Positions 4,357-51,700 of a stretch of 64,000 bases of DNA are shown here, in pieces (the stretch's first letter is position 1; each line of letters opens with the position of its first letter). Source of the stretch: Histomonas meleagridis 2922-C6/04-290x (taxonomy: Eukaryota > Protista > Parabasalia). A program made the position numbers and the translations under genes. The notes beneath the pieces were generated by a model. The model did not search any database. It was not told where the DNA came from and saw nothing but the letters and a program-made list of their open reading frames with translations. The stretch is taken from contig JAANOX010000011.1 in assembly GCA_020184695.1 (NCBI GenBank), positions 310,001 to 374,000 of the forward strand. The letters run 5' to 3'.

Positions 4357-4960
4357 TGTAAATGTGAATTGACTACTTACGATTAAATGGCCGGCCATTT
4401 AAAATAAACGGTTTCTAATGGGGCACGTTTAGGGTCTCTTCTCAACAAAGGGAAAAAATGTTTCTTTTTTGGTGAAAATAATCCTTTTTTAAATTTATTG
4501 TAAAATATTTAAAAATATTTTGCTGCATATGTTTATAGTTCCTAATAAGATGTTTGCATCAAAGAAAGAACTAAATTTGATTTTTTTTTATCTTATGTTT
4601 TGTCTTCTAAAAAGGTCTTCATAAAATCACATGATAAATACTTCTCAAAAAAAATTTATACTAAACACATTACACGTGAAACAAAGAAACAACGATTGAA
4701 AAAAATTCTCCTAAACATAATATTGTTTTGGAATCTTTTTTTAAAAATTTGTATTTGGAATCACTATGAACAAAATTAAACAAGTTCTATAAGAACTTAA
4801 TTTATGAGTCACACTAACTTGAAAAAATTCTTTCGAAAAAACAATACAGTTTTCTGGTTCTTATATAAAATTTAAAGAATTAATATTAAATCAAAAGTTT
4901 TGGTGAATATCAGCAACAAAGCGCAATTAAAACGGTTTTCGATGAATATACGAACAAACC

Positions 4961-6262: not shown

Positions 6263-6540
6263 CGGTTTGGGGGCCCCCGCGTGTTTAACGTTCTTTTTGT
6301 AATTAAAAAATTTTTATGTTCGAATTTTTTAGTTAAATAATCACAACCTATATTATATTTCGATACAATATGAAGTTTCGAAGTCAAATATAGAGAAAGA
6401 GTTTGGTGTGAAATGGGATTTCAAATCATTCAGCGGCTGAATCCAACATTAGAATTACCACCGTTTACATATAAACTTTTTCAATGTGATCACATTGAAA
6501 AATGTAACACAATTTCGGCAGATTTAAGAGGTTTATATAA

Positions 6541-12312: not shown

Positions 12313-13210
12313 ATTTTTTTCATTGGCATCAATTCCTTCTTTTTCAAGAAGCAATATTACAATATTAATGTTATTTTGAGCAAATGCAATTCTGACTGCT
12401 GTATCAAATATTTTTTTGAATTTCCAAATATTATTTTAAAATATCAAATTATTAAAATAAATCCGAAATAGGATAAACAAATATCTTTAACATTAACATC
12501 AATATCTTCTTGTTCAAGAAGTAATTTAACGATTTCGATGTGACCTTTCCAAGATGCCCAAATAAGAGCTGTTCGAAATAGTTTTTATAATTTCTAAATA
12601 TTATTTTAAAATTTCAAATTAATAATATAAATACCAAATAAAACAAATAAATATTTTTAGCATTAATATCAATTCCTTCTTGTTCAAGAAGTAATTTAAC
12701 TATTTCTGTATGACCATTTTCAGATGCTTTCATAAGTGCTGTTTTAAATAATTTAAATAATTTCCAAATATCATTTAGAAATATTAAATTATTAAAATAA
12801 ATATTAAATAAAACAAATAAACATCTTTAGCATTAATATCAATTCCTTCTTGTTTAATAAGTAATTTAGTTGTTATTTTATATATTCAAATAGACACAAA
12901 AAAAATTTATAATATTTGGAAAATACTTCTTGTTTTCTGCTTCTTTGGCTAGAATTATTTCTAAATAATTAACATAAATATCATCAATAAAAATTCTTGA
13001 ACAATAAGCATAATAAATTAAATGAATTAAGATTAAATTATATGTAAACGGGAAATTTATATCAAATAAATTCATGGTTTGTTCAATTGAAGATTCTAGA
13101 TTTTCTTGTGATAAATTAAAAATAATTTGCTCAAGTTCAGACAATAATTCGATTTCTGTTGAATTATTAATTGCTTTGTTTGTGGGTTCATTTGATAATT
13201 TCCCTTGCAA
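12313..13210 (-). pseudogene. DUF3447-like/ankyrin locus with an internal deletion; ankyrin repeats separated by three 80-nt spacers
   Basis: The N-terminal fragment joins a partial repeat (KLLIKQEGIDINAKD). Spacers at 12743-12822, 12573-12652 and 12403-12482 decode to NNGK, GERR and RDGD. Confidence 0.8.
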
Positions 13211-19843: not shown

Positions 19844-21500
19844 CTACTTAGTTTTAAGTAAATTGACAATATCTGTAAAACCTTGTGATGTTGCATAAAT
19901 CAAAGCATCGTTAAATAATTTTAGGGAATACCGAATATTTCTTTGGAATTCTAAATTTTCTAAATATAATGTAAATAAAAAAAACAAGCATCTACAACAT
20001 CAATTTTAATACGTTTTTGTTCAATAAGTAATTTGACTGCTTCTGTATTGCCAGCTAAGGAAGCCCAAATAAGTGCCGTTTTAAATATAGAAAATAATTT
20101 CCAGATACTATTTTGAAACATAAAATGATTAATACAAACATTAAACACAATAAATAAAAATCTTCTTTGTTAATATCTATTCCTTTATGTTCAAGAAGTA
20201 ATTTAACAATATCTGTATGTACAAATTGAGCTGCAAACATAAGAGCTGTTCTATTTAATTCGAATAATTTCCAAATATTTTCTATAAATATCAAATTAAC
20301 AAATCAAATTCGGAAATAAACATAAAAACATCTTTAAGATTTACATTAATTTTCTTTTGTTTAAAAAGTAATTTCACAATTTCTACATGTCCTTTTTTAG
20401 ATGCTTTCATTAATGGAGTGTGAAATAATATAAATTATTTCCAAATATTCATTTAAAATAAAATATTATTGAAATTAACTCTATTATAAATAAATAAATG
20501 GTTTTTGAGTTAACATTAATTCCTCCATACTCAAGAATTAATTCAGCAATTTCAGTTAGACCTCTTTGAGATGCAATACTAACGGCTGTACTAAATAATT
20601 TCAATAATTTCCAAATATTAGTTTGAATTTTTAATTATTTTATATAAAAAATAAATAATAAAAATAAATAGTTTTATGATTTAAATTGATTTTTTGGTTC
20701 ATGAAAATTTTTGCTATATCACTATGATTATTTTTCAAGGCTAAAAGAAATGCATTACTGAATAAATTATATAAAATCCAAATAATATTTAGAAACATCA
20801 AATTATGAAAACAAATAGGATAAAAAACATATTAAACACATGTGATATTAATATCAATTCCTTCTTGTTCAAGAAGTAATTTAACTATTTCTGTATAACC
20901 ATTTTTAGATGCTTCCATAAGTGCTGTATAAAATAATTTAAATAATTTTTAAATATTATTTTGAAACAAAAAATTATTAAAAGAAATATTAAATATAATG
21001 AATAAATATCTTTAGCATTTACAGCAATTCCTTCTTGTTCAAGAAGTAATTTAACGATTTCTATATAACCTCCTTTAGATGCATATATTAGTGCAGAGCT
21101 AATAAATTAATATTAATTCCAAACATTATAATCACATATCAAGTTAATGACAAAAAAATTATCTTTAATATTTACATCAATTCCTTCATGTTCAAGAAGT
21201 ATTTTAACTATGTCAGTAAAACCTTTCCAAGATGCAAAAATTAATGCAGTTTTATATAATAATAAATAACACCAAAAATCAAAAAGAAATATTAAATTTT
21301 TTAATCAAACTTTAAATAAATATAATAAAAATTTTTTTCATTTACATCAAAATCAGCTTTTTCAAGATATTTAAAGATATCATTCCGATAAAATTCAGTT
21401 TCTACTTCACATGAACGCGAAATCAATAATTTCAAGATTTCCTCCTGCAACAGCAAAAGGCCTGAACATTTTATAGCAGGATTATTTAACATTAAGTATT
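19844..21500 (-). pseudogene. Ankyrin locus with a decayed DUF3447-like 5' part and nine spacer-separated repeats
   Basis: Spacers of 80, 63, 80, 81, 80, 80, 80, 80 and 80 nt. Loops decoded from the eight non-81-nt spacers: KNGK, NDGS, NFKY, IKGS, RFGH, RDGR, NYGK, TRGN. Stop at 19844. Confidence 0.8.
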
Positions 21501-26162: not shown

Positions 26163-27746
26163 TTAGAATCCATTTCCGTAAGAGCCACCAATGGATTGGC
26201 CACCTCCTCTTACAACTTGTTGTGGCATTCCATGTAATGTTCGCGGCTTTTCTCTTAGATCAAGGTTCACCAAATCGCCAAATTCATCAAGCATTCCACC
26301 GCCTTGGCTTTGTTGTGGCTTTTGCTGTGGTGGAGGAGGAGCTGAACCACTATCATGGAGATCCAAGAACGAATTGTTGTATTGCTGCTGCGGAAGTTGT
26401 TGCGGTTGGGGTTGGGGTGCCCCAAATAATAAGTCATCAAAGTTTTGCTGTTGTTGTACAGGTCTTTGTTGCTGCTGTTGGAAGTTGTTTTGTGACTGTT
26501 GTCCAAATCCTTGTTGTTGTGGTTGACCAAATACATCAAATCCTTGTTGTTGCTGTTGTTGTACTGGTCTCTGTTGTTGTTGTGGTTGGCCAAAGACGTC
26601 AAATCCTTGTTGTTGCTGCTGTTGCATTGGTCTTTGTTGTTGTTGTTGATGTTGACCAAATACATCAAATCCTTGTTGTTGCTGTTGAACTGGCCTTTGT
26701 TGTTGTGGTTGTCCGAAGACGTCAAATCCTTGTTGTTGTTGTTGCATTGGCCGTTGTTGTTGTTGAGGTTGACCAAATACATCAAATCCTTGTTGCTGTT
26801 GTTGAACTGGCCTCTGCTGTTGTTGTGGCTGGCCAAACATATCGAACCCTCCTTGCTGTTGTTGCCTTTGTTGTTGTGGATATTGATCAAATGAACTTCG
26901 ATGAGTTTGATTCTGTTGTTGTGGCTGTTGATTGAAGATGTCGAATCCTCCTTGTTGCTGTTGTCTTTGTGGTTGTTGTTGCTGCTGAGCAAATGGATCA
27001 AATGTGTTTTGATTTGATTGGCTTTGTTGTGGACTTGCAAATGGATCAGATGCCCTTCTGTCCGACTGTTTGTTTTTAGCACGCGGATCGAAGTCAAGTT
27101 CTTCGTCGTCAGATGATGATGTGGATTTCTTTCGGGAATTCTCAGTTGGAGTATAGACGTTTGGTGATATTGGATTGATACCTCCAATGGACATGTCCAT
27201 GGGTACTACGGTCGTATCGATCATAATACCATTCATTTCAAATGGTTCAACATAAAATTGTTTAACTTGCCTAATTTGAGCAACTGATGAATTTCTAATT
27301 TGTTCATACATTTCATCCGATTTTAATATTTGCATCAAATTTCCAGCTAAGTTTCTGCAATCATCTTCTGCTCGATAATTCCTATGATCAGAAGGTGCTG
27401 TAGTGTATGATTGAGACACAACATTCAAGCTACTGATGAATTGCATAGCATTTGAACGCATAGTGTCGGGCCCATACTTGACACAATAATCAAGAATTTG
27501 AAGAGATTTTTGACATGACACCACATCATCAGCGATTCTATCGAACCTCTTTATGAGTGTTTTATTGATACTTGGGAGAGCGGCTTGAACATAACAAAGA
27601 TGAGCAATTGTTTGAAATTCGCTTTCTGTCACATGGTCATCATCATCGCGTGAAGCTTCTAAAACAATCTTTTGAACAGGGTCTTTTCCTTTGAAAACAT
27701 ATTGTGTTTTGCGTGCAGCTTCTTTGGCTTTTTTCCACACTTGCAT
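26163..27746 (-). CDS. Epsin/epsinR-like ENTH-domain protein with a Gln-rich repeat tail (527 aa)
   Basis: N-terminal ENTH features (KIVLEASRDDD, KSLQILDYCVKYG), DPF motifs, repeated GFDVFGQ, C-terminal DEFGDL. Start set at MQVWKK. Confidence 0.85.
   Translation of the reverse strand: MQVWKKAKEAARKTQYVFKGKDPVQKIVLEASRDDDDHVTESEFQTIAHLCYVQAALPSINKTLIKRFDRIADDVVSCQKSLQILDYCVKYGPDTMRSNAMQFISSLNVVSQSYTTAPSDHRNYRAEDDCRNLAGNLMQILKSDEMYEQIRNSSVAQIRQVKQFYVEPFEMNGIMIDTTVVPMDMSIGGINPISPNVYTPTENSRKKSTSSSDDEELDFDPRAKNKQSDRRASDPFASPQQSQSNQNTFDPFAQQQQQPQRQQQQGGFDIFNQQPQQQNQTHRSSFDQYPQQQRQQQQGGFDMFGQPQQQQRPVQQQQQGFDVFGQPQQQQRPMQQQQQGFDVFGQPQQQRPVQQQQQGFDVFGQHQQQQQRPMQQQQQQGFDVFGQPQQQQRPVQQQQQQGFDVFGQPQQQGFGQQSQNNFQQQQQRPVQQQQNFDDLLFGAPQPQPQQLPQQQYNNSFLDLHDSGSAPPPPQQKPQQSQGGGMLDEFGDLVNLDLREKPRTLHGMPQQVVRGGGQSIGGSYGNGF
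26490..26990 (-). repeat. Coding minisatellite: GFD(V/M/I)FGQPQQQQRP(V/M)QQQQ units with CAA runs
   Basis: Directly visible ~51-60-bp units, about 7 copies. Confidence 0.9.
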
Positions 27747-28513
27747 TTTGTATGCCAAACGCCTCAATTTTTGAATACACGAAACGGCAACAATGCTTTG
27801 AAAAGTAAAGATCGGTTTCCCCAGAAATCTTCGTACTTTTGGTGTTTGTCAATCGCTTTTGATTTAAAAAGTCAATCGTAGATTCAATTTTCTGAAGTTA
27901 AAAAAGAACCACTTTATTTGGGCATTGATATCATTTGGCATCCTCCAAATCCATAATCCTCGAAAAATGTAATTAACTCTTGGCGTATGACTCAGGTTTA
28001 ATAAAATGTGAGGATAATTCAAAATGAGAAAAGAAAAATTTACAATTATATACCAAACTATATCGTATTAAGAATTCTAAAGTTGTCACTTCTTTTTGAA
28101 TTGGAAGTATTAAGGTTTTTAACTTCGACTCGCTGACAAGTTTGTTCCTAAGTTTTACATTTTTTTTATTTTGTCATTGTTCATATCACATCACTTTCCT
28201 TTGAAATAACTGCAGTTATTGAATTAAAATTTCAATAACACCAATATGAGGTGAAATGACCATTTAAATGGGACAACCCGAACTCATGGTGCAAGAATTT
28301 GAACATGAACTCAATGATAAGTATCATGGATTTCATGCCAACAAATACTTTCATCCAAATAGTTCAAACCAAACAAAATAACTGTTATTTGAATAACATC
28401 CTTCACACATATTTATATAAATGATTTTTGAATTGATATTTGGACTACGGTTTTTATCATGGTATCGTTAGTGGTTATTTCATCCAAATTCTTTTTATTT
28501 CAAAAGTGACAAT

Positions 28514-31037
28514 ATGAAACCAGTAAGATTGAGCAAAAGTTCTACAGAAGCAATAGTAAATGAAATATTAAACTTAAAGTCACTTGAAGAAATTGTTTTG
28601 AAATTGAATTGTAATAATGTTAAAGAATCAGTTGAATCAATTTTTAGTATGTTTGGGCAAAATTATCCATATTCAGTTTTTTCTATTTCATGTCAATTAG
28701 TGTATTCAGCGTTTGTTTCACTGTTGAATGAATTTGATGTTTACTTTAATTTTTTAGAAGCATTATCAAGAAAATATGAACAATTTTGTAAATTTCACAT
28801 AATAAACATTTTCACAAATTTTCTTCTTTTCACCCAAACTCAAGAAGCAGATTATCTTTTAGAAAAGCTGTCTGAATATAATTTAATTAATAATAACTTA
28901 TTAATCAAAAGGGGCTCTTTATATTTTCTGCATTTAATGACAAAAACAGATTATTATTATGATGTAAAAAATTTAAATCTGAGAAAATATAATTCGAAAA
29001 ATTTAATTTTTAGTGATAATATTGAAAAAAATGATTGGGAACTTCATAAGCAATTAATTAAAGAAGGAATTAATCCAAATGAAATTGCAAAAATAATTCG
29101 AAATGATGAAATCGAAAAACTTCAAGAAATATCATCACAAGATAATTTTGATTTTAATCAATATATTGAGCCATCAATTTATGAAAGATGTTCATTTATT
29201 AATCAAGAAAATGTTAAATTAATCGATTATGCAGCATTTTTTGGATCAGTTAAATGTTTTAAATATTTACTTATGAATAATGCAAGTGTAGAAAACACAG
29301 GTAAATATGCAGTTGCAGGTGGAAATCTTGAAATTATACATTTGTGTGAACAAAATCATTCATCATTTTATGGATCATATGAAATAGCAATTGAATTTCA
29401 TCGAAATGATATCTTTAAATATCTTTATGAAAATATTATTATTAAAACTATCGATTTGAAAATGTTTTATAAAAAATGTATTTTAAATAATTCGTATGAA
29501 ATTCTTTCATATTTGTATGAAATTGAAAAAATGAAATTTGAAACATTTATTAATGAGTTTTCATTTATAGGAAATTTATTCATTATGAAATGTTTTCTTG
29601 ATGATAATATAAAATTGCTAAATAATGTGTTTATATCATTTGCAAGATCAGGTAATGTAGAACTTATTGAATACATTATTAAAAATAAAAATATTGATGT
29701 TAATATGAAGGATGTTTCTAAAATATTTTTGAAATTTGTTTGAATAATATGATATATCATAATAACATTTGGTAAATATTTAAATTTTTTAATACAGCAT
29801 TTATAATAGCTTCTAAAAATGGACACATTGAAGTTGTTAAATATCTTCTTAAACAGAAAAAAATTAAAATCAATGTTCGAAATATTTTTTTTATTATATT
29901 AATGATTCTTTTAATAATTTTATATATCAAAATAATATTTGGAAATTATTTAAATTATTTGAAACAGCACTTATGTATGCATCTTCAAAAGGTTATACAG
30001 AAATAGTTAAATTACTTCTTGAACAAAAAGGAATTGATATTAATGCTAAAGATATTTATTTGTTTTATTTAATATTTATTTTAATAATTTATTATTTCAA
30101 AATAATATTTGAAAATTATTTAAAATATTTGGTACAGCATTTATTAGAGCATCTCAAAATGGTTATACAGAAATTGTTAAATTACTTCTTGAACAAAAAG
30201 GAATTGATATTAATGCTAAAAATATTTATTTTATTTTCTATTTCAAAATAATATTTGGAAATTATTTAAAATATTTGGTACAGCATTTATTAGAGCATCT
30301 GAGAATGGTAGAACAGAAATTGTTAAATTACTTCTTGAGCAAAAAGGAATTGATATTAATGCTAAAGATATTTATTTGTTTTATTTAATATTTATTTTAA
30401 TAATTTTATATATCAAAATAATATTTGGAAATTATTTAAATTATTTGAAACATCACTTATGTATGCATCTTCAAAAGGTTATACAGAAATAGTTAAATTA
30501 CTTCTTGAACAAAAAGGAATTGATGTTAATGCTAAAGATATTTATTTGTTTCATTTGATATTTGTTTTAATAATTTAGAATTTAAAAATAATATTTGGAA
30601 ATTATTTAAATTATTTGAAACAGCACTTATGTATGCATCTTCAAAAGGTTATACAGAAATAGTTAAATTACTTCTTGAACAAAAAGGAATTGATATTAAT
30701 GCTAAAGATATTTATTTGTTTTATTTAATATTTATTTTAATAATTTATTATTTCAAATTAATATTTGGAAATTATTTAAAATATTTGGTACAGCATTTAT
30801 TAGAGCATCTCAAAATGGTTATACAGAAATAGTTAAATTACTTCTTGAACAAAAAGGAATTGATATTAATGCCAAAGATATTTATTTGCTTTATTTAAAA
30901 TTTATTTTAATAATTTTATATTTCGAAATAATATTTGGAAATTATTTAAATTATGTAAAACAGCACTTATTATAGCATCTGAGAATGGTAGAACAGAAAT
31001 CGTTAAATTACTTGAACAAAAAAGAAATATCATTTAA
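28514..31037 (+). CDS. DUF3447-like + ankyrin-repeat gene; 400 intact codons, then ankyrin repeats interrupted by 17-nt inserts
   Basis: ORF is open to KD at 29713, followed by eight spacers (80, 80, 80, 56, 80, 80, 80, 80 nt) and 90-nt stop-free repeats. Stop at 31035-31037. A full product requires insert removal (inference). Confidence 0.8.
29714..30959 (+). repeat. 170-bp tandem array: 90-nt ankyrin helix unit + 80-nt spacer of 4 x (17-nt insert + codon)
   Basis: Repeat starts at 29794, 29964, 30134, 30280, 30450, 30620, 30790 and 30960. Confidence 0.95.
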
Positions 31038-31166
31038 TTGTTATATCACACTCATAAATTATTATGTATACCTTTTAGAAAAATGATTTTTTTATAAATT
31101 ATGATTTTTTTTGTTTCAAAATTCGTATTTTTATGTTTTTGACATTTCATCTATTTAGAATTTAAT

Positions 31167-31320
31167 GTAAGTATACTTACGCACTTTTTTCCTTTCTCGC
31201 CTGTGAGTTGACTTGATATAGGGAATAAATGGCCAGCACGATGCACGGGCGCAATTTTTTTCCTATATCAAGTCAAACGGTGAGATCCCACATATGCCAA
31301 TCTGATTCCCTTTTTTTATT
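31167..31320. other. GC-richer hairpin segment (candidate structured ncRNA or transposon end)
   Basis: Perfect 14-nt palindrome gtaagtatacttac (31167-31180). Perfect 15-bp inverted repeat at 31208-31222 / 31262-31276. T-run at 31311. Confidence 0.4.
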
Positions 31321-34203: not shown

Positions 34204-36310
34204 TTATAAAAATTTTTCTACAAGATCTAAATTCCCATTTGATATTTCAAAATAAAGTGCAGAGCGAAATGATTTTAATTTATTTCAAATATTATTTTGA
34301 ATTTTCAAATAATTAAAAAGATTTCTAATTAAATTATAAAAATATCTGTTGCATAGAGATCAATTTCTTTCTGTTCGAGAAGAATATCAATTATTTCATT
34401 ATGATCATTAGAAATAGCAAACATTAATGCGGTCATACCTAATATAAGTTATAAATATTAAATGAATAAAATCGATATTATCTTTTAAATTGATATCAAT
34501 TTGATCAAATTTTAGAAGCACTTTAACAATATCTACGAAACCTTTGGTAGATGCAATAATGAGAGCTGTTTTAAATATATTGATGATATACCAAATATTA
34601 TGTTTAATTTTTAAAACAATAAAATAAATACATTTTGTGCATTTAGTTCAATTCCTTTTTGTTCAAGAAGTAATTCAACAATGTCAACACGATTATGTTG
34701 TGTTGCAATTGTAAGTGCTGTTTCTAATAATTTACTTAAATTCCAAAAATATTATTCAAACATCAAAACACTAAAATAAATTGAAAATTTAAACATAAAA
34801 CATTTTTTGAATTTATATCAATTTTTTCTTGAATAAGAAGCAATTTAATAACTTCAATTCTATGATATTTTATAGCAAAGATTAGAGCTGTATCGAATAA
34901 TTTGAGTAAATTCCAAATATTATTGATATATATAAAATCTTTGATAAGAATATCAAATAATATCATTAAACATTCTTAAAATTATCAAGATCTTCCTGTT
35001 GAAGTAGCAATTTTCCGATTTCATTATGTCCTAACATAAATTCTTTTGTGATGATATTCTTGATTAATTAGAATAAATTTGAAATATTTGATAAAAATAG
35101 CAATTAATTTTAATAAACTTTGGATGATATTAATAAAAATTTTTTATATTTATTTCTATTTCTTCTTTTTCAAGAAGTAATTTTACAGTTTCAATATGAT
35201 TTCTTTCAGATGCATACATAAGTGCAGTACAAAATAATTATATTTAAGTCCAAATTCATTATTTAAACATAAAATCAATATAATCGACTATATATAGAGC
35301 GATTTTACATCTGTTGCATTTATGTCAATTCCTTCTTGATCAAGAAGTAACTTTACAATAATAAAATTGTTCTTTTTTGAAGCGCTCATAAGTGCTGTTC
35401 TAAATATTTTAAATAAATTCCAAATATTAGATAAAGTTTTCATTAAAATTAAAGGATCATATAATTGTATTATTAAATATTACTTGCATTTATACTGAAA
35501 TTTTTTATCCCAAGAATATATTCAACAATTGCAATGCTTCCTTTTTTACATGCCTTAAGAAATGCCAAAACAAAAAAATATATAGAACATTATATAATAT
35601 TTTGAAATAATAAAAATTAATAAACATTTTGTATAAGAAATTAATTTCATCAATATTATCATTAGGAAACATTTTTTCAAGATATATTTTAGCACATTCA
35701 ATTAACTCTTTTTTAAGTCTTTCAAAATATAATACATCAATTAATTATAATAAATTCCATATGTTACTTTAAAATGAAAAAAATATCGATAACACTATGA
35801 TGAATATTCACTATTTCTTCAAGAATATATGTAAATATAACATTAATATTATTGGCTGATATCTTATTCGAAGAGAATTTAAATACTATTGAAAAATATC
35901 AAATAAAAATCAAAAATATCAAATTTCCAAAAACGTTGAAAAAAAAAGAACACATATCATTGTGTGATATTATATCAGCTTGTTCAAGAATCGAAACAAC
36001 CATTTCTTTAAAACTATTTTGGATTAATGGTTCATATAAATCACCAAATAAAAACATGAAATAAAAAATTGGAATATACATCAAATGATTCATCAAAATC
36101 AATTTCTTTATCACCAAGAAAGCTTATAATGTTTGTAAGTAATTCATTACTTATAGAATTCCTGAATACTGTGTAATATAATTTAAATAAACTTTATAAA
36201 TTGAAATAAGATATTTTCAGTGTCAAAATAATTTTCTGCTTTTCTTGCAAGAAATTCAACAGAACTTATCATACTATCTTGATAAATATCATTCAAAATT
36301 TTATCATCAT
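34204..36310 (-). pseudogene. DUF3447-like/ankyrin locus with a decayed 5' half and spacer-separated repeats
   Basis: Stops in the 5' region. Measurable spacers are 80, 80, 80, 80, 62, 46 and 80 nt, plus one degenerate repeat. Loops YEGR, IYGC, DYGD, SDGE, NNGM, REER. The 5' boundary is approximate. Confidence 0.75.
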
Positions 36311-36325
36311 CTCCAAAATTTTAGA

Positions 36326-37271
36326 TTAAATGTTACAGAAATTAGAATGAGTTTCTTTATGATGAATTAACATTTTAACAATATCATCATAAGCTGAAGC
36401 ATAAACAAGTGCAGAGTTAAATATTGATAATAAATTCCAAATATTATTTGGAATTTTCACATAATAAATATAAATTCTAAATTAATTAAAGAAACATCTT
36501 TAGCATCTATATCAATTCCTTCTTGATCAAGAAGGAATTTTACAATATCCTTGTTTCCCATTTTTGCAGCAAGTATTAATGGTGTTTCAAATATCATTTT
36601 AAAATATGATATTTTTGAAACAAACTTTAATAAAACATCATTAACGTGATTCGTACAATTTATATCAATTCCTTTTTGCTGAAGAAGTAATTTAATGATA
36701 TTTGTTCTCTCATTTATAAATGCAATCATAAGTGCTGTATCATATATTGTAAGTAATTTCCAAACGTTAATTAAAAATATTAAATATTAAAAAGAAATAT
36801 TAAAGAAAACAAATAAAAATTTTTATCATTAATATCAATTCTTTTTTGTTCAAGAAGTAATTTAACAATTTCAATTTCATTATATTTAGATGCTAGCATA
36901 AAAGCAGTATCAAATATTATGGGTAATTTCCAAATATTATTTTTTAACTTTAAGTTATTATAATAAATATCAAATGAAACAAATAAAAATTTTTAGCATT
37001 AATATCAATTCCTTTTTGCTGAAGAAGTAATTTAACAATTTCAATTTTATTATTTTCAGATGCAATCATAAGCTGTATCAAACAAATTATATAATTTCCA
37101 AATATTATTCTCAAATTTTAAATTATCAAAACGAAATTTAAATAAAATTATTTTATATTTTTAAAATCTATATCAATATTTTTATGTTGCAGAAGTAACT
37201 TAACAATATCAAATAAATTATGACTAGTAGCATAATGAAGTACTTTTTCGAATATTTGAAAAAAAATCCAT
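36326..37271 (-). pseudogene. Ankyrin-only locus; six repeats, with a 2-nt deletion in repeat 2
   Basis: ATG at 37271 (MDFFQIFEKVLHYATSH). Spacers 80, 80, 80, 63 and 80 nt decode to KKGD, DKGD, NNGD, HKHE and REGN. Deletion near 37072 (acagcttatg). Confidence 0.7.
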
Positions 37272-38059
37272 TTATGAATTTGGAACATCATTTTAAAAAA
37301 TACCGGCCACACTTTTCGAATGCAATTCTATTAAAGACGATCGAAGAGGAAAATACTTATTTTGGCTGGGTTTGTGATTCATAAGAACTTTTTATAAGCC
37401 AGAATTTCATATGGGGTTCATAATTCATTACATACAGTATATTCATCACATATGTATATTATTTTCATTTCGAAAAAAATGATTATCATTTTTCATTTCA
37501 TTGTTAAATAAATATACTGTGCAATTTAAACGCCCAGTCAACAGCAGTCATTATAAAATGTGCATTCATACAATTTTTGTGATGATTCTTCCGAAAATAA
37601 AAATCCAGACTCACTCAGTATCGTAACAAGATAATTTAAACCGTTTTAATTCAATAGTAGTACTACTATTGATATTTTTCAATTTTGATAAGCGGATTCG
37701 GTTATTTTCAATTGGGTATTAACAAATAACCGCTATTTAAAAAGTTATAACTTGCTTCAAAAAGAAATCAATAAAAATTCTCATAAGACATTAAAGCAAC
37801 ACATAAAATTATAATATGAAAATTTTAATTTGGTCATGTTACATGTACAATTTTTGATCAAATACTTAAGATTATTTCAATCGATATGCAAAATGATTTT
37901 ATAACAATAAAAAAAATTTTGAATAAAATTGAATATATTTTAATTGCCGATTAATTAAAGGACATTAATCAAATTTAAATCATGTTTGCGTAAGGATATC
38001 AGTTCGATGGAACACCAAAAAGTATTGAAAAAACCGTCAGTCAAAAAGTTCAATCCCAA

Positions 38060-40412: not shown

Positions 40413-40590
40413 ATCTTTTGCATTAATATTAATTTTTTCATGAGTTAATAGTAATTTAACTATTTCTGTTTTGTCATTTTTTATTGCTATCATAAATGTT
40501 GTTTCATTTAATTTAAACAATTTCCATTCATTATTTTAAATATTAAATTACCAAAATAAAAATCAAACAATAGAAATAAATATCTTTATT
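40413..40590 (-). pseudogene. Orphan ankyrin repeat with a 79-nt spacer downstream of the 42639 gene
   Basis: KD at 40584, spacer 40503-40581, then TTFMIAIKNDKTEIVKLLLTHEKININAKD. Confidence 0.7.
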
Positions 40591-40614
40591 AAGGTAATTA
40601 TTTTAAATCCATTT

Positions 40615-42639
40615 TCAAAATTTCGTGTATTCTTGGTGTGCAAATTTCAAATTGCATCGTCTAGTTTTATTTATCATTCCTGATTCCAATAATTTAACAA
40701 TTTCAGTATGTCTATAATATTTTGCAATCATTATTGCTGTTTGAATATATGGAAAATAACCCCAAACAGATGTTAGAATCTTGGAACTTTCTAACTAACC
40801 ATCGATTAAGGTGTGTAAATATTTTTTACATTTATATCAATTGCCTTGTGTCTTATCAGTAATTTTACAATTTCATTAAAACCTAATATTGATGCTTCCA
40901 TTAATGCAGTATTGAGAAATTTATATAAACTCCAAACAACATTTTGTAACACGAATTAAATAAGATAAAGACTAAAAATAAAAAATAAATATTTTTTTCA
41001 TTTACATTCGTTTGCTTACACTTTAATATGATTCCAACAATTTCAGTATAGCCAAAGTCTGTGGCACATAAAAGAGGTGTATTAAAAAACATAGATAAAT
41101 TCCATATAAAGTTTTAAAAAATCATCAAATATATATTATTAATAGATTTGAAATTTAAATCAAATCCTTTGAGAGTAGCAAAAAATTTAATAATTTCAGT
41201 ATTTCCATTTTGAATTGCTATATGTATTGCTGTATCAAATTATATGAACTAACACCAATCATTAAAAATTATCTCTAAAAAATTGATATTAAAATTGATA
41301 ACAATAAAAAAATATTTTTTTCATATAAATTAATTTCTTTTTCTTTAGAAACTAAACTCACAAATAAGACATGACCATTTTTACATGCTTTCATAAGTGC
41401 TGTATTAAATAATTTAATTATACTCCATTTTTACTTTAAAACAAACACTAAAAAATATTCGAAAACTTTAAAATTATAATCAATTTTACCTTTCTTTTGG
41501 AGATATTGAAGAATTTCTATGTTTCCAGAATTAGCTGCTTTTATTAAAAGCAAATTTATGTTTAATTTTTTATTGAAATTAAGAATTGGGAAAATATTTC
41601 CAACTTTTATAAATGTTCTAATAAACTGTTCATTAATTTCCATTCCATTTTGTACTAAATAGAAATATATCTCGTAATTATCATATTTAATACAATTAAT
41701 TCCTAAATTCTGAATAATGTTTTGTGATTTTTTCTTATTATTTCTTTTATCAATAATTTCTTTTTCATAAAAATATTTAAAAATATCATTTCGATGATAT
41801 TGAATTGAAATTTCGAATTTATTTTCAAAAGATAAATTTTTTTGTTCACATAATTTAACAATTTCTAAGTTTCCTCCAGCAATAGCATATTTTCCTGTAT
41901 CTTTCAGCCCATTAAGTTTTGGCAACAAATATTTAAAACATTGAATTGCACAAAAATATGCACAATAATCAATTATTGATACATTATCATTATTAACAAA
42001 AGTACATTTTTCATATATTGAAGGCTCAATTTTTTGATTAATTTTATAATATCTTTTTGATAATATTTCTTTTAATTGTTCTAAATCATCATTCCGTATA
42101 ATTTTTGTGATTTCTAATGGATTAACTCCTTCATTAATTAGTTCTTTATGAAGTTTCCAATCATCTTTCGAAAGTTCTTCAAAGTTTGAATCAAAATATT
42201 CATAAAATTGATTAAATTCTATTAAATTATATACATTTTCTTTTGGAAGATAATTTGCAAAATATAAATTATTTTTAGCATAACTTGAAGGAATAATTCC
42301 TTTTTCAATCATTTTTACTAAAAAATAATTTGATTCTTGAGTTTTCATTCCACGAAGATATTCTTTGAATATATTTAAAATTGGATCTGTGTAAGGGCAA
42401 ATTTGATTCTCATTGACTTCAATTAATTTTAAATATTCAAAATAAAGCCCAGGCTCTTTCATTTGGGTAACAAATGCTCTATATACAAAACGACAAATAA
42501 TAATATTAAATGAATAACAAAAATTTCGATTAAATAAATTCATAGAACTCTGTACAGATAATTCCATATTATCATAATTCAGCCCAAAAATTATTTCTTC
42601 GAGTGTTTGAATCATTTGTTCCCAATTAAAATTCATCAA
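40615..42639 (-). CDS. DUF3447-like + ankyrin-repeat gene; reconstructs to an intact 572-aa ORF after removing the 17-nt inserts
   Basis: 391 open codons, spacers of 63, 80, 63, 80 and 80 nt (SNGN, NRGD, DDGN, SRGN, DQGQ), four 30-aa repeats and a 41-aa end. The parse of the first spacer is tentative. Confidence 0.8.
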
Positions 42640-42702: not shown

Positions 42703-45700
42703 TTATTTCTCCTTGAGTAATTCCTCAGGTACTGATTCATAGCAAATCATCTTCGGGCTAATCATTGGCATTTCACCGTATGGTTGAATTATCATACCAT
42801 AATTCAAACTTCCACAATCTTTTCCGCTAGTTGTTTTCAGGTTCAACCAACCAGTAACAGGTACTCCGACTTGCATTGCATTAATTGGGATTGCGATGAC
42901 ATCTGAAATTTCTTTAGATTTTGTTACGTTTTTGTCGAATAATTTAACTTCAACAGCATCGTCCATTGTTGTTAAAACGAATGAGAACACACTTCCCCAT
43001 TGAGGAGTTTGTGTATTATCACATACACTTGACGTTACTGAATAGATATCAGATGAAAGCTTCAAAGAACAATAACAATCATTCTTTGATAATTTGTCAA
43101 CTTTTGGAATGTTAATTGCTTCCATAAGAACGAAATGAAGTTGAAGTGGTATAAATGGCTGTGGAACAAATGCCTTTTGAAGTGGTGCTGCAAGATGTAA
43201 TGATATATTAATATTTTGACCTCCAGTTCTAAAGTTTATTGTTGTATCTTTAGTTAACCCAAATCCTACGTCCATAAGTCTGAATGTTTCTTTATCAATA
43301 ACTTGATCTTCTTTATAGCTATTGAAACGGATAAGTTCAAATAATAACATAGCAGTATTAAGTCCTATTACGTCAATTCCTATGATATCACTTTTACCTT
43401 GTTGTTTAGATATAATTCTTGAATATGCATAAGTTGTTGATTTTTGATTAAGGAATGAAACTCTAATATAATAATAATGTAGAAGTTGTGTATTATTTAC
43501 CTTCATGTATACATGCATATTCTCACTTTCACCAGGTGAAATAGGTTGAGGATTAAATGGTACACCATCATGTGGGATAAGTTGATATTGTACTTGTACA
43601 TGTCCTGGATTTAAGTCTAATTCATTTGTATATACTTTATTGAGTTCTAAATTCGTGAGTGGAATACTTTGAGGTTTAGTTTTTTCTTCAGTATGTTCAA
43701 GTGAATATTGACATAATGATATATTAAGTTTATCATTTGGCATAGGAATATATTCAAAGTCATCTGAAAATGCATTTCGTATTGTTGAATATGATGGATT
43801 TAAATCACTTTCAAGTTTGACATTTAATAATGAATTAAATCCAAGTGAACCTGAATTACCAATAACACGAACATTAAGTCGATTCATATTAAATGGTGCG
43901 TCAACGTATGATGTTTGACCAGGTGCTGTAATTTGATATATTATTTGAAGCTTAGTATTTTTATGAGTTATATCACGATGTTGTACAACACCAAGTTTAT
44001 TTTGATTATAATATATATATTCTACAAGCATTGATTTCTCGTTATCATATTTATCATTGACAAATATTGTAAGAATTTCTTGTTCTATACTTCGAATAGG
44101 GATATGAAATTCTTGATTCCAAATTGGAGATTTATTATTTTCAATAGCTCTTGTGCTTTGTTCAAATGTTTTTGATTTTAATTTTACATAAGGTATAACA
44201 AATTCATTGTTAGAAAGATTATAACCTCTGGTTATTATAACATGCATCATATATTTATCTTCTGTAACTTTATCATATACTTCAACAAAATCAGTAAATT
44301 TAGGTGTGCCTTCAATTACAAGTTGATAACGAACAAATATTTTGTTTTTGTCTTCAAGTGTTAACCAGTTTTGATAAGTTTTTCCTATTTCAAGTTCACA
44401 TAATTGAAGTGTAGTTTTTGTAATTTGTTTAGAATCTTTATCATTAATTTTATCCATAACATAAAATGTTATAGAATCTGTTTGAGGATTAGTAATATAA
44501 TATTCAATAAATTGATACCATTGTGGTGTTGAAGTTTTATGTAATATACTTGTACATGAACCAACTTTCACATCATTTATTCCAACTTTACAATATGGAT
44601 TATATTTAGATAATATTCCTGGAGTTATTTGTCCAATAATTGCTTCATTTACTTGTAGATAAAGCTTATGAAGTGTAAATGGTTGTTGATCAACAAATGG
44701 AATTTGTCCTGGTGCTGTAACATGTATTCTAATATGTAATTGTGCGTTACCTTTAAATGTTAACCATTCATCAAATACAATTGAACGTGGGAATTCCGAT
44801 ACATATTTCCTAAATTTACCAATTAAATCATCTTTTGAAACATGATAATCATAGTCATAAAGTTTAATTTTGAGTTTATCCCATTGATAACTTCTAATTT
44901 CTCTTGAAACTATATAATTCCATTTAGGATGTAATGTATTTCGAATTACTGGTGTATAGAAATCTTTATCTGAGAAACTAATCTTACAATAAGGATCAGC
45001 AGAATTATCAACATCTTGTGCTTCAATTCCGACTGCTTCAATAAAGTGCATATGAATCATATAATTTGAATATGATTTAAGTGGTGGTGGAGTATTAAAT
45101 TGTTGTCCAATAAAGTATTCTTGACCAATTGGAAGAATTTGGCCAAAGCATCGAATGTCTTCATCAGAAAGATCAACAACTTGTCCAATAGTCATATTCG
45201 ATAATGATATTATCTTTTCACATACTTTAACTGGTTCAACTCGTTCAAGAATTGGTGATGGGATCTTATAACCAGTTAATATTAATTTATCACGATTCAA
45301 ATCAGTAATAATAAATGAAAAGTTTTCTTCCCATGTAAAATCAATTCTGTTAGTTGTTGATTCACAATATAAATCATTCTCAAGTTGTAAACGGAAGAAC
45401 ATTTCATTGTTGCCTTCCTTATTACTTTCAACTGGTTTAAGATATTGTGAAATATGGAAATGAAGTTGATTAGGTACAAATAATTGTTCAATAAATGGCG
45501 TTTGTCCTTCAGCTGCAATATGATAACGAAGTGTAACACTTCCTAATCGAGAATGATCATGATAACCTGAAAGTTTAATTGTTTCATAGTATACTTTTCC
45601 ACATTGAAGTGAATTTAATGGAATTAAATGTGATGAAAGTTTAGTATCAACACCAACATTACTATCATAAAATGTAAGTTTAAATGTATCTGTTGATAAA

Positions 45701-48700
45701 CTTGGAATATCTAAGCGGAAATATTGATTATAGTATGGGAAGCTGGATTTATCAATGGTTCGTGTAGTAAATGTTGTGTTTTTCCTTCCAATAAATTCAA
45801 GTTTAGCATATGGATTAATCTTTTGTGTGCTGAGATTGCTGGCAGATATAATGTGAACATGGAATTGTGTTCCTGTTGATGGTGATTGAAGAGGTTGTGG
45901 TGCATATGGAGCTGTATCTAATGTTAATGTATTCATTGGATCAACAAGAACTTTAAGATGAATTTGACCATAATTTTCACTTGATTTAACTGTCGGTTCA
46001 AGTGTGTAATATTCATCATAAATTAAATTAGGTTCAAATTTAGATAATGGTAATTTCAATTGACATATTGATCGATCTTTAACATTACCTTCATCATATA
46101 CTTCAACAATAAGATCATCAGTGGTTTGTGAATTCATTATAAATGACATGTTTTGGAACCATTGTGGTGTAGAACTGTCTTGAATAGCTTTAGTTTTGGC
46201 TTTAGTGATATCATGCTCAAGTGAGACTTTACAGAAGCAATCGTTTTTAGTTACCTTGTCAACTCGTGGTAAATCAAATGCATCATGAATACAGACATGA
46301 ACTTTGCCTGGTTTAATTTGATGTTCAACAAATGCATATTGATTAAAATCTGTCACTTGTGAGACAATATGAATTTCACCTGTACGATTACTTACTGGTA
46401 ACCATTCATCTTTAATAATTCCATTGCCCATGTCTGAAACTTTATATGTAAATGTACATAATTTATCATCTTTATTGTTCTTATCATAATCATATAATAC
46501 AACTTTAATAATATCTGTACCAAAACTATCAATTGGAATATGGAATATTTGATTAAATGTCGGATTTAATGATTTGAAGATAACTCGTGTCATAGAAATA
46601 TATTTCTTATTAGTATCATTCTTCTTTTCTTTAAGTTTTTCACGTGTTGTTGTAAAGTGCATATATTTTTAACATATGCATCAGTGAGACCTCGTGGTCC
46701 ATCTGCACGTGGTAAATTACATGCTTCTTTAATATGAAATGCGCATATCGTTGTTCACCAATAAATGGAATAATAGTTGGTTGATTATATGTAAATGGTG
46801 TGTTAATAGGTAATATAGTTATTAATACTTTACATTTACATGTAATAGAACCTTTGAGTTCAACTTCTTGTTCAACTGTTTGACCTTGTTGAATAGATTC
46901 TAATAATAATAATCCTTTAGAAATATTCTTAGATGTAATAATTTTACCTTCTTGATATTGTTCATTAAGATTAATTTGAATCTTATCATTACTTGGATCT
47001 GTTAATATAAAGCGTGATTCCATATTAAATAATCCAGTATTTGATACTAATGATGGTTCTGATTTAATCTCATCTTCTAATTGAACATCACAGAAATAAT
47101 TAGTTTTATCTTTAAGTCCTTGAATTTCTGTTAATCGGAAATGTGCTTCAAATGGTATAAATGGATTTTGAACAAATGGAATATCACCTTTGTTAGTTAA
47201 ATGATAAATGACATGAAGTGTACCACCTTTGGATGACCCAAATGAATTCAAATCAATATATTGATCATATACAACTCCTGGTTCAATAGAACGTAATAAA
47301 AATGATGTATATGAAATCGCTTTGTCTTTATCATATAATGTAATCTTAAATTCATCACTATTTAAAATAACTTTATCAAATGTAAATGTTTGATTCCAAT
47401 ATGGCATACTAGAATTCTCAATAAGTCGCGTCTTTTGAATAGTTTTTATCACGTCCAACAAATTCTAATTTACAATATGGATTAACCGTACCAATAATTT
47501 TAGATTTGGCATTAGATAAATCAATGATTTTAATATTAAATTGAACATTACCTGCTGGCTTAAGTGATGGTTTATGTGCATATGATGCTGTATCTAATGT
47601 TAATGTATTCAGTGGATCAACAAGAACTTTAAGATGAATTTGTCCTTTCATTTCTTTAGTTTCAACTGTCGGTTCAAGTGAATAATAATCATCATAAATT
47701 AAATTAGGTTCAAATGTAGATAATGGTAATTTCAATTGACATATTGATCGATCTTTAACATTACCTTCATCAAAGATTTCAACTTTAAGAATATCAGTAG
47801 TTTGTGAATTCATTATAAATGACATGTTTTGGAACCATTGTGGTGTAGAACTATCTTGAATAGCAATGGTATTAGTAGTACTAATATCATGTTCAAGTGA
47901 TACTTTACAGAAACAATCGTTTTCACTCGTTTTATCAACTCGTGGTAAATCAAATGCATCATGAATACAGACATGAACTTTGCCTGGTTTAATTTGATGT
48001 TCAACAAATGCATATTGATTAAAATCTGTCACTTGTGAGACAATATGAATTTCACCTGTACGATTACTTACTGGTAACCATTCATCTTTAATAATTCCAT
48101 TGCCCATGTCTGAAACTTTATATGTAAATGTACATAATTTATCATCTTTTATTGTTCTTATCATAATCATATAATACAACTTTAATAATATCTGTACCAA
48201 AACTATCAATTGGAATATGGAATATTTTGATTAAATGTCGGATTTAATGATTTGAAGATAACTCGTGTCATAGAAATATATTTCTTATTAGTATCATTCT
48301 TCTTTTCTTTTAGTTTTTCACGTGTTGTTGTAAGTGCATATATTTTAACATATGCATCAGTGAGACCTCGTGGTCCATCTGCACGTGGTAAATTACGTGC
48401 TTCTTTAATATAGAAATGCGCATATCGTTGTTCACCAATAAATGGAATAATAGTTGGTTGATTATATGTAAATGGTGTGTTAATAGGTAATATAGTTATT
48501 AATACTTTACATTTACATGTAATAGAACCTTTGAGTTCAACTTCTTGTTCAACTGTTTGACCTTGTTGAATAGATTCTAATAATAATAATCCTTTAGAAA
48601 TATTCTTAGATGTAATAATTTTACCTTCTTGATATTGTTCATTAAGATTAATTTGAATCTTATCATTACTTGGATCTGTTAATATAAAGCGTGATTCCAT

Positions 48701-51700
48701 ATTAAATAATCCAGTATTTGATACTAATGATGGTTCTGATTTAATCTCATCTTCTAATTGAACATCACAGAAATAATTAGTTTTATCTTTAAGTCCTTGA
48801 ATTTCTGTTAATCGGAAATGTGCTTCAAATGGTATAAATGGATTTTGAACAAATGGAATATCACCTTTGTTAGTTAAATGATAAATGACATGAAGTGTAC
48901 CACCTTTGGATGACCCAAATGAATTCAAATCAATATATTGATCATATACAACTCCTGGTTCAATAGAACGTAATAATAAAAATGATGTATATGAAATCGC
49001 TTTGTCTTTATCATATAATGTAATCTTAAATTCATCACTATTTAAAATAACTTTATCAAATGTAAATGTTTGATTCCAATATGGCATACTAGAATTCTCA
49101 ATAAGTCGCGTCTTTTGAATAGTTTTATCACGTCCAACAAATTCTAATTTACAATATGGATTAACCGTACCAATAATTTTAGATTTGGCATTAGATAAAT
49201 CAATGATTTTAATATTAAATTGAACATTACCTGCTGGCTTAAGTGATGGTTTATGTGCATATGATGCTGTATCTAATGTTAATGTATTCAGTGGATCAAC
49301 AAGAACTTTAAGATGAATTTTTCCATTTGTATCTTTGATTTTATCATTAGATCCCTCTAAATTATAATAATCATCATAAATTAAATTAGGTTCAAATGTA
49401 GATAATGGTAATTTCAATTGACATATTGATCGATCTTTAACATTACCTTCATCAAAGATTTCAACTTTAAGAATATCAGTAGTTTGTGAATTCATTATAA
49501 ATGACATGTTTTGGAACCATTGTGGTGTAGAACTATCTTGAATAGCAATGGTATTAGTAGTACTAATATCATGTTCAAGTGATACTTTACAGAAACAATC
49601 GTTTTCACTCGTTTTATCAACTCGTGGTAAATCAAATGCATCATGAATACAGACATGAACTTTGCCTGGTTTAATTTGATGTTCAACAAATGCATATTGA
49701 TTAAAATCTGTCACTTGTGAGACAATATGAATTTCACCTGTACGATTACTTACTGGTAACCATTCATCTTTAATAATTCCATTGCCCATGTCTGAAACTT
49801 TATATGTAAATGTACATAATTTATCATCTTTATTGTTCTTATCATAATCATATAATACAACTTTAATAATATCTGTACCAAAACTATCAATTGGAATATG
49901 GAATATTTGATTAAATGTCGGATTTAATGATTTGAAGATAACTCGTGTCATAGAAATATATTTCTTATTAGTATCATTCTTCTTTTCTTTAAGTTTTTCA
50001 CGTGTTGTTGTAAGTGCATATATTTTAACATATGCATCAGTGAGACCTCGTGGTCCATCTGCACGTGGTAAATTACGTGCTTCTTTAATATAGAAATGCG
50101 CATATCGTTGTTCACCAATAAATGGAATAATAGTTGGTTGATTATATGTAAATGGTGTGTTAATAGGTAATATAGTTATTAATACTTTACATTTACATGT
50201 AATAGAACCTTTGAGTTCAACTTCTTGTTCAACTGTTTGACCTTGTTGAATAGATTCTAATAATAATAATCCTTTAGAAATATTCTTAGATGTAATAATT
50301 TTACCTTCTTGATATTGTTCATTAAGATTAATTTGAATCTTATCATTACTTGGATCTGTTAATATAAAGCGTGATTCCATATTAAATAATCCAGTATTTG
50401 ATACTAATGATGGTTCTGATTTAATCTCATCTTCTAATTGAACATCACAGAAATAATTAGTTTTATCTTTAAGTCCTTGAATTTCTGTTAATCGGAAATG
50501 TGCTTCAAATGGTATAAATGGATTTTGAACAAATGGAATATCACCTTTGTTAGTTAAATGATAAATGACATGAAGTCTTCCTCCTTTATCTTCTTTATAA
50601 GGAATCATATCAATATATTTATCATATACAACACCTGGTTCAAGAGTTTTTAGTGCAAATGATGTATATGAAATTAGATCATCTTTTAATTTATCTTTAT
50701 CCATTATTATAAATCTGAATTCATCACTATTCAAACTTTTAACTTTAAAGAAGAAATCTTGATTCCATAATGGATTCAACGAGTTATCAATAATACGAGA
50801 TTTCTGAATAGTATCATCACGACCAATAAATTGCATTGAGCAATAACCATCACTTCCTGTTACATCCATAGTTGGAAGATTCGTAGCGCCAATTAATCTA
50901 ACATTAAATTGTAATGATTCACATTGTGGAAGAGGTGGCTTAGGATCAATAATTCCTTTAAATGGTTCAACGTTAGGGTTATCATGATGTAATATTAATC
51001 TAATTTTACCTCCATTCTTATAAGATTTACATGGTACTAAATCATACCATTTATCTGTTACATGGCCAAACTCTAATGATGAAAGTGGAATTTCTAATGA
51101 AGATACTTCTGTATTCTTTACACCTTGATCTTTTAATACTAATTTGAATATATCTTTTTCTGAATTTGTTACAATAACTTTTTGCTTTTCGAACCATTGT
51201 GGTGAAAGTGTATTATCTTTAACACTTGTTCTCTTCTTCTTTAAATCTTCTACAAATCCAAATACACAATATGGATCTGTTTTACCAAGTGTATCAACTT
51301 TAGGAATATCCATAGCTTCAGCGATTTCTACGTTAAGAATAGTTGGAACAAATGGAACATTAATGAATTTAGGTTGAAATGCTCCAGCTAAATGAATGAT
51401 TAAATGTATTGATGTAGATGTATTACTTGAAGTTGACATTTTGAGGTTGTAGAACTTGTCATTAACAATTCCATATTCTAATTCGCAAACATTTAATATT
51501 AATGAACCGATTTTATCATCTTTTCCAACTTTATCATGATCATATAATACTAATTCAAATTGATCGGATTCTAGACATTTTATAGGGAAATGGAATTCTT
51601 GATTCCAACTTGGAGTAAGTGTTTTAGGTTTAATTTCTGTTTTAACTGGTTCATCTCTATCTATTATTCTAAGTTTACAATATGTATCAGCAAGTCCATT

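Follow-up and report, generated by a model that had tools for sequence, protein, structure and literature searches.

How does a cell obtain a continuous protein from a gene whose coding repeats are separated from one another by AT-rich, apparently non-coding spacers? This question is raised by a gene at positions 28514–31037 (forward strand) of a 64,000-nucleotide (nt) stretch of the Histomonas meleagridis 2922-C6/04-290x genome (contig JAANOX010000011.1, positions 310,001 to 374,000; assembly GCA_020184695.1), referred to below as the window. From 29714 onward the gene consists of 90-nt units, each encoding 30 residues of an ankyrin repeat (T-A-L...K-D), with AT-rich spacers between them. A preliminary description of the locus had parsed 80-nt spacers as [17 nt + 3 nt] x4 and proposed that the cell skips 17 nt at four points in every repeat. 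Our analysis favours RNA-level removal of four separate 17-nt phase-0 inserts from each 80-nt spacer, and we put the probability of this explanation at roughly three in four.

The first exon (28514–29713, +) is an uninterrupted open reading frame (ORF) starting with the ATG at 28514. It encodes a 400-residue N-terminal part composed of DUF3447 and degenerate ankyrin repeats, matched by Pfam PF11929 (DUF3447) and by Ank families; a protein search returned homologues from H. meleagridis and Tritrichomonas. It is followed by spacer 1 (29714–29793, +) with inserts at 29714–29730, 29734–29750, 29754–29770 and 29774–29790 and the candidate micro-exons GAA (29731–29733), GAT (29751–29753), GGT (29771–29773) and AAT (29791–29793), which read E-D-G-N. 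Ankyrin exon 1 (29794–29883, +; 30 residues, T-A-F...R-N) comes next. Both the position of this spacer and its parse into these four codons, as first described, proved correct.

Contigs from three runs labelled RNA and from one DNA run (X1) were aligned to 29300–31150. Two RNA contigs, rec19 of run X4 (374 nt) and rec26 of run X5 (381 nt), match the genome with 0 mismatches over 29463–29714 and 29790–29884 (252 + 95 nt), thus covering ankyrin exon 1 without mismatch. At spacer 1 they carry seven letters that fit neither flank. Between the GAT at 29711–29713 and the ACA beginning at 29794 the RNA therefore contains 1 + 7 + 4 = 12 nt where the DNA contains 80 nt. A model mRNA reading GAT GAA GAT GGT AAT ACA predicts the observed break points exactly: by chance the G of GAA equals g29714 and the T of GGT equals t29790, and the next model letters mismatch on both sides. 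The same two contigs leave the genome at 29884, in spacer 2: in the codon AAT, the first A still agrees with a29884, while the next A is mismatched to t29885. At the other end of the gene, contigs rec16 of run X3 and rec23 of run X4 begin an exact match at 30957, where the slot-4 codon of the last spacer starts, and continue with 0 mismatches to 31135; rec23 has six further letters upstream of 30957 without a match to the genome. The break points 29714, 29790, 29884 and 30957 are those expected when four 17-nt inserts are missing.

Across the ankyrin family, the commonest loose ends of alignments in all three RNA runs lie at 30054, 30223/4, 30540 and 30710, all of them spacer starts. The RNA continues from these loose ends with 12 nt and then ACAGCACTT, as in AAA AAT GGA AAA ACA. 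The loops found between the joined sides read E-N-G-H, N-D-G-N, K-K-G-K, E-D-G-K, R-N-E-N and K-N-R-K. Sequencing depth behaves in a similar manner. In the bin 30540–30601, which lies wholly in a spacer, depth relative to the neighbouring exon bin is 1.5–5% in RNA and 59% in DNA; in the bin 30726–30787, likewise wholly in a spacer, it is 0.2–1% in RNA and 37% in DNA. The share of the sampled words of the locus that is present amounts to 0.55–0.64 in the RNA runs, approximately the expectation for exons only, and to 0.71–0.80 in DNA. The preliminary description had suggested looking for excised forms in genomic data; of the 15 best-supported joints, 14 are represented by 0 contigs in the DNA run, and the DNA of the 64-kb window, which holds seven such loci, contains no joined repeat junction when up to three mismatches are allowed. 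The proposal of a fourfold 17-nt skip is thus supported in its RNA-level form, by contig break points and by spacer depth. As to the routes it had left open, the joints and the dip in spacer depth, which occur in the RNA runs but not in the DNA run, speak more for ultrashort introns of a non-canonical kind, with micro-exons of 3 nt, than for DNA excision or ribosome hopping, and the inserts are not retained in these contigs, with 12 nt standing in place of 80.

Placing all boundaries one nucleotide earlier or later was considered and rejected, as the loop consensus in RNA is GGA and not GGT or AGA. One RNA contig (30596–30709) appears to show an exon end joined to GAT TGT GGA, with insert 4 still in place behind it. 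This may be an RNA caught part-way through processing or one from a paralogue with a single insert; the former reading would hint at removal of the inserts one by one.

The remainder of the gene follows the same plan, all on the forward strand. Spacer 2 (29884–29963, 80 nt; grid codons AAT TAT GGA GAA, NYGE) precedes ankyrin exon 2 (29964–30053), and spacer 3 (30054–30133, 80 nt; AAT ATT GAA GGT, NIEG), at whose first base RNA loose ends accumulate, precedes exon 3 (30134–30223). An aberrant spacer of 56 nt (30224–30279) separates exons 3 and 4 (30280–30369). The spacer at 30370–30449 (80 nt; AAT TAT GGA GAA, NYGE) leads to exon 5 (30450–30539), that at 30540–30619 (80 nt; GAT AGA GGA GAA, DRGE) to exon 6 (30620–30709), and that at 30710–30789 (80 nt; AAT ATT GGA GGT, NIGG) to exon 7 (30790–30879); the two latter spacers contain the bins of low RNA depth. 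The last spacer (30880–30959, 80 nt; AAA TAT GGA AAA, KYGK) is followed by the last ankyrin exon (30960–31037), which ends with the stop codon TAA at 31035–31037. All six loops listed in the preliminary description for these 80-nt spacers can be read from the grid codons. Exons 1 to 7 were detected as units by a position-specific scoring matrix (PSSM), and exon 2 matches Pfam PF00023 on its own, over positions 4–32 of 33 (E=3.7e-9, 36.8 bits, cut-off 21.1). It follows that the four residues between units correspond to model positions 33, 1, 2 and 3, and that the conserved Gly is the third of them, in slot 3.

In the 56-nt spacer, 24 nt of the 170-nt unit are deleted (146-nt period). What is left reads as 16 nt surviving from inserts 1 and 2, then insert 3, GGA, insert 4 and GGT. 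Although the frame downstream of it would be broken unless the 16 nt are removed too, the RNA contigs show the last spacer of the gene to be processed.

Is the 17+3 grid a property of the spacers in general? A PSSM search of both strands of the window found 39 ankyrin 90-nt units at seven loci. A strict set comprised the 22 spacers of exactly 80 nt between two detected units (88 inserts), and scanning directly for the pattern of four inserts gave 33 genuine 80-nt spacers (132 inserts), two false hits having been dropped. The spacers are paralogous, so that counts on the grid are not independent trials. None of the 132 grid codons of the 33 spacers is a stop. Slot 3 encodes Gly in 27 of the 33 (GGA 24, GGT 2, GGG 1), and the other slots mainly N, D, K, R, E and Y. 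Measured against these numbers, the preliminary counts hold in substance: a stop-free grid (given as 0 of 148) and the residues favoured in slots 1, 2 and 4 were found again. The claim that 37 of 46 spacers have 80 nt is of the right order, although the figure differs from the 33 of our grid scan, and Gly dominates slot 3 here as well (given as 30 of 37), with 24 GGA codons in both counts.

Within the strict set, Gly codons number 20 on the grid, 3 at the next offset and 0 at the remaining 18. Off-grid offsets contain up to 42 stops among 88 triplets; offsets 0 and 14 are stop-free as well, and for this reason stop avoidance alone does not discriminate. The comparison of on-grid with off-grid triplets, put forward earlier as a genome-wide tally and made here for the window, hence confirms the enrichment of Gly but not the uniqueness of the stop-free register. 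GC content is 33% in grid codons versus 7.7% in the inserts. Mean pairwise identity is 70% among inserts versus 53% among grid codons, which fits variable loop residues lying between recognised non-coding elements. The 17+3 register is kept in strongly diverged spacers of the window (35308, 34801, 40990 and 62722), and outside it in three metagenome contigs (L001, L003 and L006) and in another H. meleagridis locus (L002). Judged from these sequence patterns, the grid codons are constrained in the way of coding sequence, and this holds for the diverged copies too.

More can be learned from spacers that are not 80 nt long. In the window, two spacers of 63 nt are each short of one whole insert and a spacer of 46 nt is short of two, the losses falling at grid boundaries; L002 has another two spacers of 63 nt that likewise parse as four codons with a whole insert absent. 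In the best parse, the loops of these short spacers in the window and in L002 read N-D-G-S, H-K-H-E, N-N-G-M, V-D-G-Y and K-L-G-F. A 78-nt case turned out to be an 80-nt spacer beside a 1-nt exon deletion, and a 62-nt case a 63-nt spacer that has lost one A from a run. Since the 63- and 46-nt spacers lose whole 17-nt inserts, the inserts behave as four separate units that are either present or absent, like introns among paralogues.

The reduction from 80 to 12 nt might also come about at the RNA level with another geometry, that is by one 68-nt intron or by two introns around a micro-exon of at least 7 nt, the grid being a by-product of the history of the repeats. A single 68-nt intron would keep the 12 nt contiguous with one flank. 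The contigs, however, extend by 1 nt on the 5' side and by 4 nt on the 3' side, and because the seven letters between fit neither flank, this variant is excluded at spacer 1. The seven letters could still be a contiguous 7-mer from inside the spacer, as the variant with two introns has it; against this, some spacers have lost precisely 17 nt or 34 nt, the loss being bounded by the grid, which indicates four units, as do the on-grid Gly codons and the GC content. We regard a different geometry as unlikely. A further explanation takes the spacer arrays for decaying pseudogene repeats and attributes the spacer-free RNA to intact paralogues or processed copies elsewhere. Several units do contain frameshifts or stops, namely the 56-nt spacer, the 78- and 62-nt cases and the array of L002 behind a transposon, and the RNA joints are mostly derived from paralogues. 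On the other hand, RNA contigs bridge the unique N-terminal exon and ankyrin exon 1 without a mismatch over 252 + 95 nt, compared with a divergence of about 10% for paralogues. Of the 15 top joined forms, 14 are missing from the DNA run, and the dip in spacer depth is confined to the RNA runs; the 64 kb with their seven loci contain no joined junction; and the grid codons are constrained as if coding, diverged copies included. Taken together, this makes decay quite an improbable account of the spacers.

Two other levels of removal have to be weighed. The inserts might be cut from DNA in some or all cells, like the eliminated sequences of ciliates, which they resemble in being short, AT-rich, of fixed length and situated within coding sequence. 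Yet the DNA run retains a spacer depth of 0.37–0.59 of that of exons, none of its contigs represents 14 of the 15 best joints of the RNA runs, and the spacers are present in the long-read genome assembly; parabasalids are not known to have nuclear dualism. DNA excision is accordingly very unlikely. Finally, the inserts might stay in the mRNA and be skipped in translation by hopping or bypassing, or the arrays might be untranslated past the first spacer. Bypassing of short non-coding gaps is established for phage T4 gene 60 and for the byp elements of yeast mitochondria, where, as proposed here, short non-coding gaps in an ORF are absent from the protein, and some spacer depth is left in the RNA runs. 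The gaps of gene 60 and of byp remain in the mRNA, however, in contrast to the Histomonas RNA, whose contigs have just 12 nt at the site of the spacer and whose spacer depth is 20–500 times below exon depth. We consider skipping at the level of translation the least credible of these accounts.

Several points weigh against the removal of four inserts per spacer. The labelling of the three runs as RNA is a guess, and assembled contigs are blind to rare forms. Gene-specific RNA support covers the first and the last spacers, the remainder of the evidence being family-wide, and the family-wide data mix paralogues at 90% likeness or more. Of the 12 nt in RNA, the five outer letters fit the four grid codons, and the identity of the seven inner ones is deduced. 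The 56-nt spacer is off grid, and the frame downstream of it is broken unless the 16-nt remnant can be removed as well. The protein collections, too, yielded neither a cDNA nor a peptide of the expected product: a search of 5.8 billion proteins with the N-terminal domain returned only genomic ORFs that end in insert 1 and no spliced protein, an 83-residue piece sized for short RNA contigs had no match in a protein search, and 1.84 billion representatives, searched exhaustively and without a profile, gave only genomic ORFs. We also know of no machinery for introns ending in UU and of no precedent for 3-nt exons between 17-nt introns. Scans of metagenomes for the spacer core and for the joined junction gave no match.

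As a class, the inserts themselves lack the defining features of the GT-AG, AT-AC and euglenid introns with which they were compared. Among 132 inserts, 69 begin with AT, 29 with AA and 21 with GT, GT starts being more frequent in diverged copies; 107 end with TT and none with AG. None has GT..AG or AT..AC borders, so that their non-GT-AG nature, a premise of the original proposal, is borne out. The pooled consensus of the 88 inserts of the strict set is R1 T2 T3 T4 A5 ... A14 T15 T16 T17, the most informative positions being 1 (purine in 93%), 14 (A in 85%, 75 of 88) and 5. All inserts are in phase 0, between codons, and within the window they are confined to ankyrin loops. The A at position 14 could be a branch point; the core of the trichomonad branch motif, CTAAC, occurs in 0 of 132 inserts. 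U12-type features are likewise missing, with 0 of 132 inserts AT..AC and a 5' consensus of ATTTA rather than ATATCC. The pairing motifs CDG...CHG of euglenid introns are not a feature of the inserts, which have a GC content of 7.7% and no stable fold. Five spacers with their flanks fold no better than shuffled sequences (z -0.56 to +1.4), although helices of AU only are poorly scored in such calculations.

A conventional alternative at spacer 1, a single GT..AG intron from the GT at 29714 to the first AG at 29797–29798, was rejected, the RNA contig matching 29790–29884 exactly, and splicing guided by structure finds no support in the five spacers folded, none of which exceeds its shuffles. In the window, no 17-nt element was found whose removal would join long ORFs in non-ankyrin genes: one candidate (5058–5085) was a false positive and another (around 48220) a frameshift by a 7-nt duplication. 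A search of the window for trichomonad-type intron motifs gave no convincing conventional intron.

With removal of four inserts per spacer as the preferred explanation, the following course of events can be proposed. The pre-mRNA would carry the spacers, and the inserts, with the consensus 5'-RUUUA...AUUU-3', would sit between the loop codons at Pfam Ank positions 33, 1, 2 and 3. The four 17-nt inserts of each loop would then be removed and the single-codon micro-exons joined into an x-x-G-x loop, by which the 90-nt exons would become a continuous ankyrin array. For spacer 1 this model predicts that the 12 nt in cDNA are GAAGATGGTAAT. Each insert would presumably be excised on its own, by intron definition and under a strict 17-nt length rule, and recognition would rely on primary sequence and length and not on folding. 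The exact length is likely to take part in recognition because it is kept where the sequence has drifted.

As to the machinery, our best guess leans somewhat towards a divergent spliceosome over a dedicated endonuclease and ligase. The lean is due to the purine-U start, the A at -4 and the U-rich body, which resemble minimal introns of other protists. An endonuclease-ligase route stays a serious alternative because the UU end and the single-codon exons are without precedent. More tentatively, Histomonas may possess a splicing system of its own that measures length and, by means other than a conventional spliceosome, removes 17-nt AU-only RUUUA...AUUU inserts while joining single-codon exons four times running; it could, for instance, pair an RNA ligase with a sequence-specific endonuclease or use a set of small nuclear RNAs of its own. 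We hold such a system to be possible but rather doubtful.

Ultrashort introns are known from other protists, with about 15 nt in Stentor, 18 nt in Bigelowiella and 23–25 nt in the type B introns of Trichomonas (PMC12316389). Like the Histomonas inserts they are tiny, U-rich, of near-fixed length and removed from pre-mRNA, and Trichomonas belongs to the same phylum. They differ in having GT-AG borders, a branch motif (TCTAAC or ACTAAC in Trichomonas) and normal exons around them, whereas the Histomonas inserts mostly start with AT or AA, lack AG ends and stand four in tandem, split by single codons. The nonconventional introns of euglenids are alike in being nuclear, without GT-AG borders, with a weak border consensus and with machinery yet to be identified (PMC12501133, PMC11170887). 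In Euglena they follow a code of mutually pairing CDG...CHG motifs, with spacers that are set and, in the acceptor exon, a purine (PMC12501133); the Histomonas inserts, by contrast, have almost no G or C and no predicted pairing, and they are far shorter and of fixed length.

The 3-nt micro-exons of animals and plants offer a parallel for single-codon exons kept in mRNA (PMC8042270, PMC8831610). Those known lie isolated between long canonical introns, while in Histomonas four follow in a row, 17 nt apart, at every ankyrin loop. Introns of tRNA genes with a bulge-helix-bulge (BHB) motif and those of XBP1 (26 nt, cut by IRE1) and HAC1 are similar in their length of 14–26 nt, in the lack of GT-AG and in the use of an endonuclease and a ligase. 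However, introns of the BHB and IRE1 type need defined helices and loops, and the Histomonas spacers fold like shuffled sequence. In the full texts searched, which leave most subscription journals outside their coverage, neither 17-nt introns nor runs of single-codon exons nor interrupted ankyrin repeats were described for Histomonas or any other parabasalid. The earlier remark that no described mechanism with this four-insert geometry was known agrees with the literature searched.

The other ankyrin loci of the window share the arrangement to different degrees. The second locus (12313–12902, -) has three 80-nt grid spacers (NNGK, GERR and RDGD). The third (19990–21330, -) combines 80-nt spacers with a 63-nt spacer at 21098–21160 that lacks insert 1 (N-D-G-S). 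Inserts of the fourth (34344–35478, -) are diverged, and it contains the 46-nt spacer (34434–34479; N-N-G-M), which lacks inserts 1 and 4, and the 62-nt spacer. The fifth (36496–37326, -) has 80-nt spacers and a 63-nt spacer at 36586–36648 without insert 1. The sixth (40413–41160, -), downstream of an N-terminal ORF at 41431–42639, has diverged grid spacers (IDGN and SRGN), and the seventh (62462–63965, +), downstream of an N-terminal ORF at 61409–62644, has seven consecutive 80-nt spacers with strongly diverged inserts.

The N-terminal domains encoded on contigs L001, L003 and L006 are about 50% identical to that of the gene studied here. In a homologue from Tritrichomonas foetus (P0020) the loop is uninterrupted and reads K-D-E-K-G-K-T-P-L, which suggests that the inserts arose in the Histomonas lineage. 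A comparison of L003 with L004 for insert polymorphism was uninformative, the two being near-identical. L003 also carries an ORF for a transposase of the DDE_Tnp_IS1595 type at 4380–5279, adjoining the ankyrin gene. At L002 (WSYJ01000186.1), in the region 5190–6500, a mariner-like transposon is inserted into the ankyrin gene, and the annotated 'caskin' protein P0018 ends inside its terminal repeat. Past the transposon the ankyrin repeats continue with their 17+3 grid, with stops present and spacers of 80, 63, 26, 91, 64 and 75 nt.

The GC content of the window is 21–43% in 2-kb windows, mostly 22–35%. A few of the sampled words of the locus are present in chicken-gut metagenomes, and the DNA runs that contain the locus are two samples of 2021 from one organism. 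The closest named protein belongs to H. meleagridis, and its contig is part of assembly GCA_020186115.1. About 170 nt past the stop codon of the gene lies an inverted repeat (31208–31276) with 26-nt arms, 88% complementary, and a GC-rich 17-nt loop; it has no second copy in the window and no match in Rfam. On the reverse strand, four abutting ORFs at 42703–56005 (2599, 263, 273 and 1319 residues) resemble one giant multi-C2-domain gene with small frameshifts. The break near 48215–48230 is a 7-nt tandem duplication (atattcc atattcc), and the breaks are not 17-nt inserts; they could reflect pseudogenisation or assembly errors. A GC-richer ORF (39% GC) at 26163–27767, also on the reverse strand, contains 57–63-nt tandem repeats over 26504–26864.

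The phenomenon looks both new and important. If confirmed, the inserts would rank with the shortest introns known from nuclear genes and be the first class of introns without both GT/AT-type 5' ends and AG/AC 3' ends, and the micro-exons would form the first runs of single-codon exons. Accepted lower limits on the size of introns and exons, as well as the rule of an AG or AC at the 3' splice site, would thereby be challenged. The 80-nt spacer with its four events offers a compact natural substrate for splice-site measurement. For the organism itself the consequence is practical. Its published annotation contains at most one intron per gene, 573 introns in total, and the genome paper makes no mention of ankyrin genes (PMC8529796); because of this limit of one intron per gene, the H. 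meleagridis proteome that underlies proteomics and virulence studies probably lacks a large ankyrin family or has it in truncated form.

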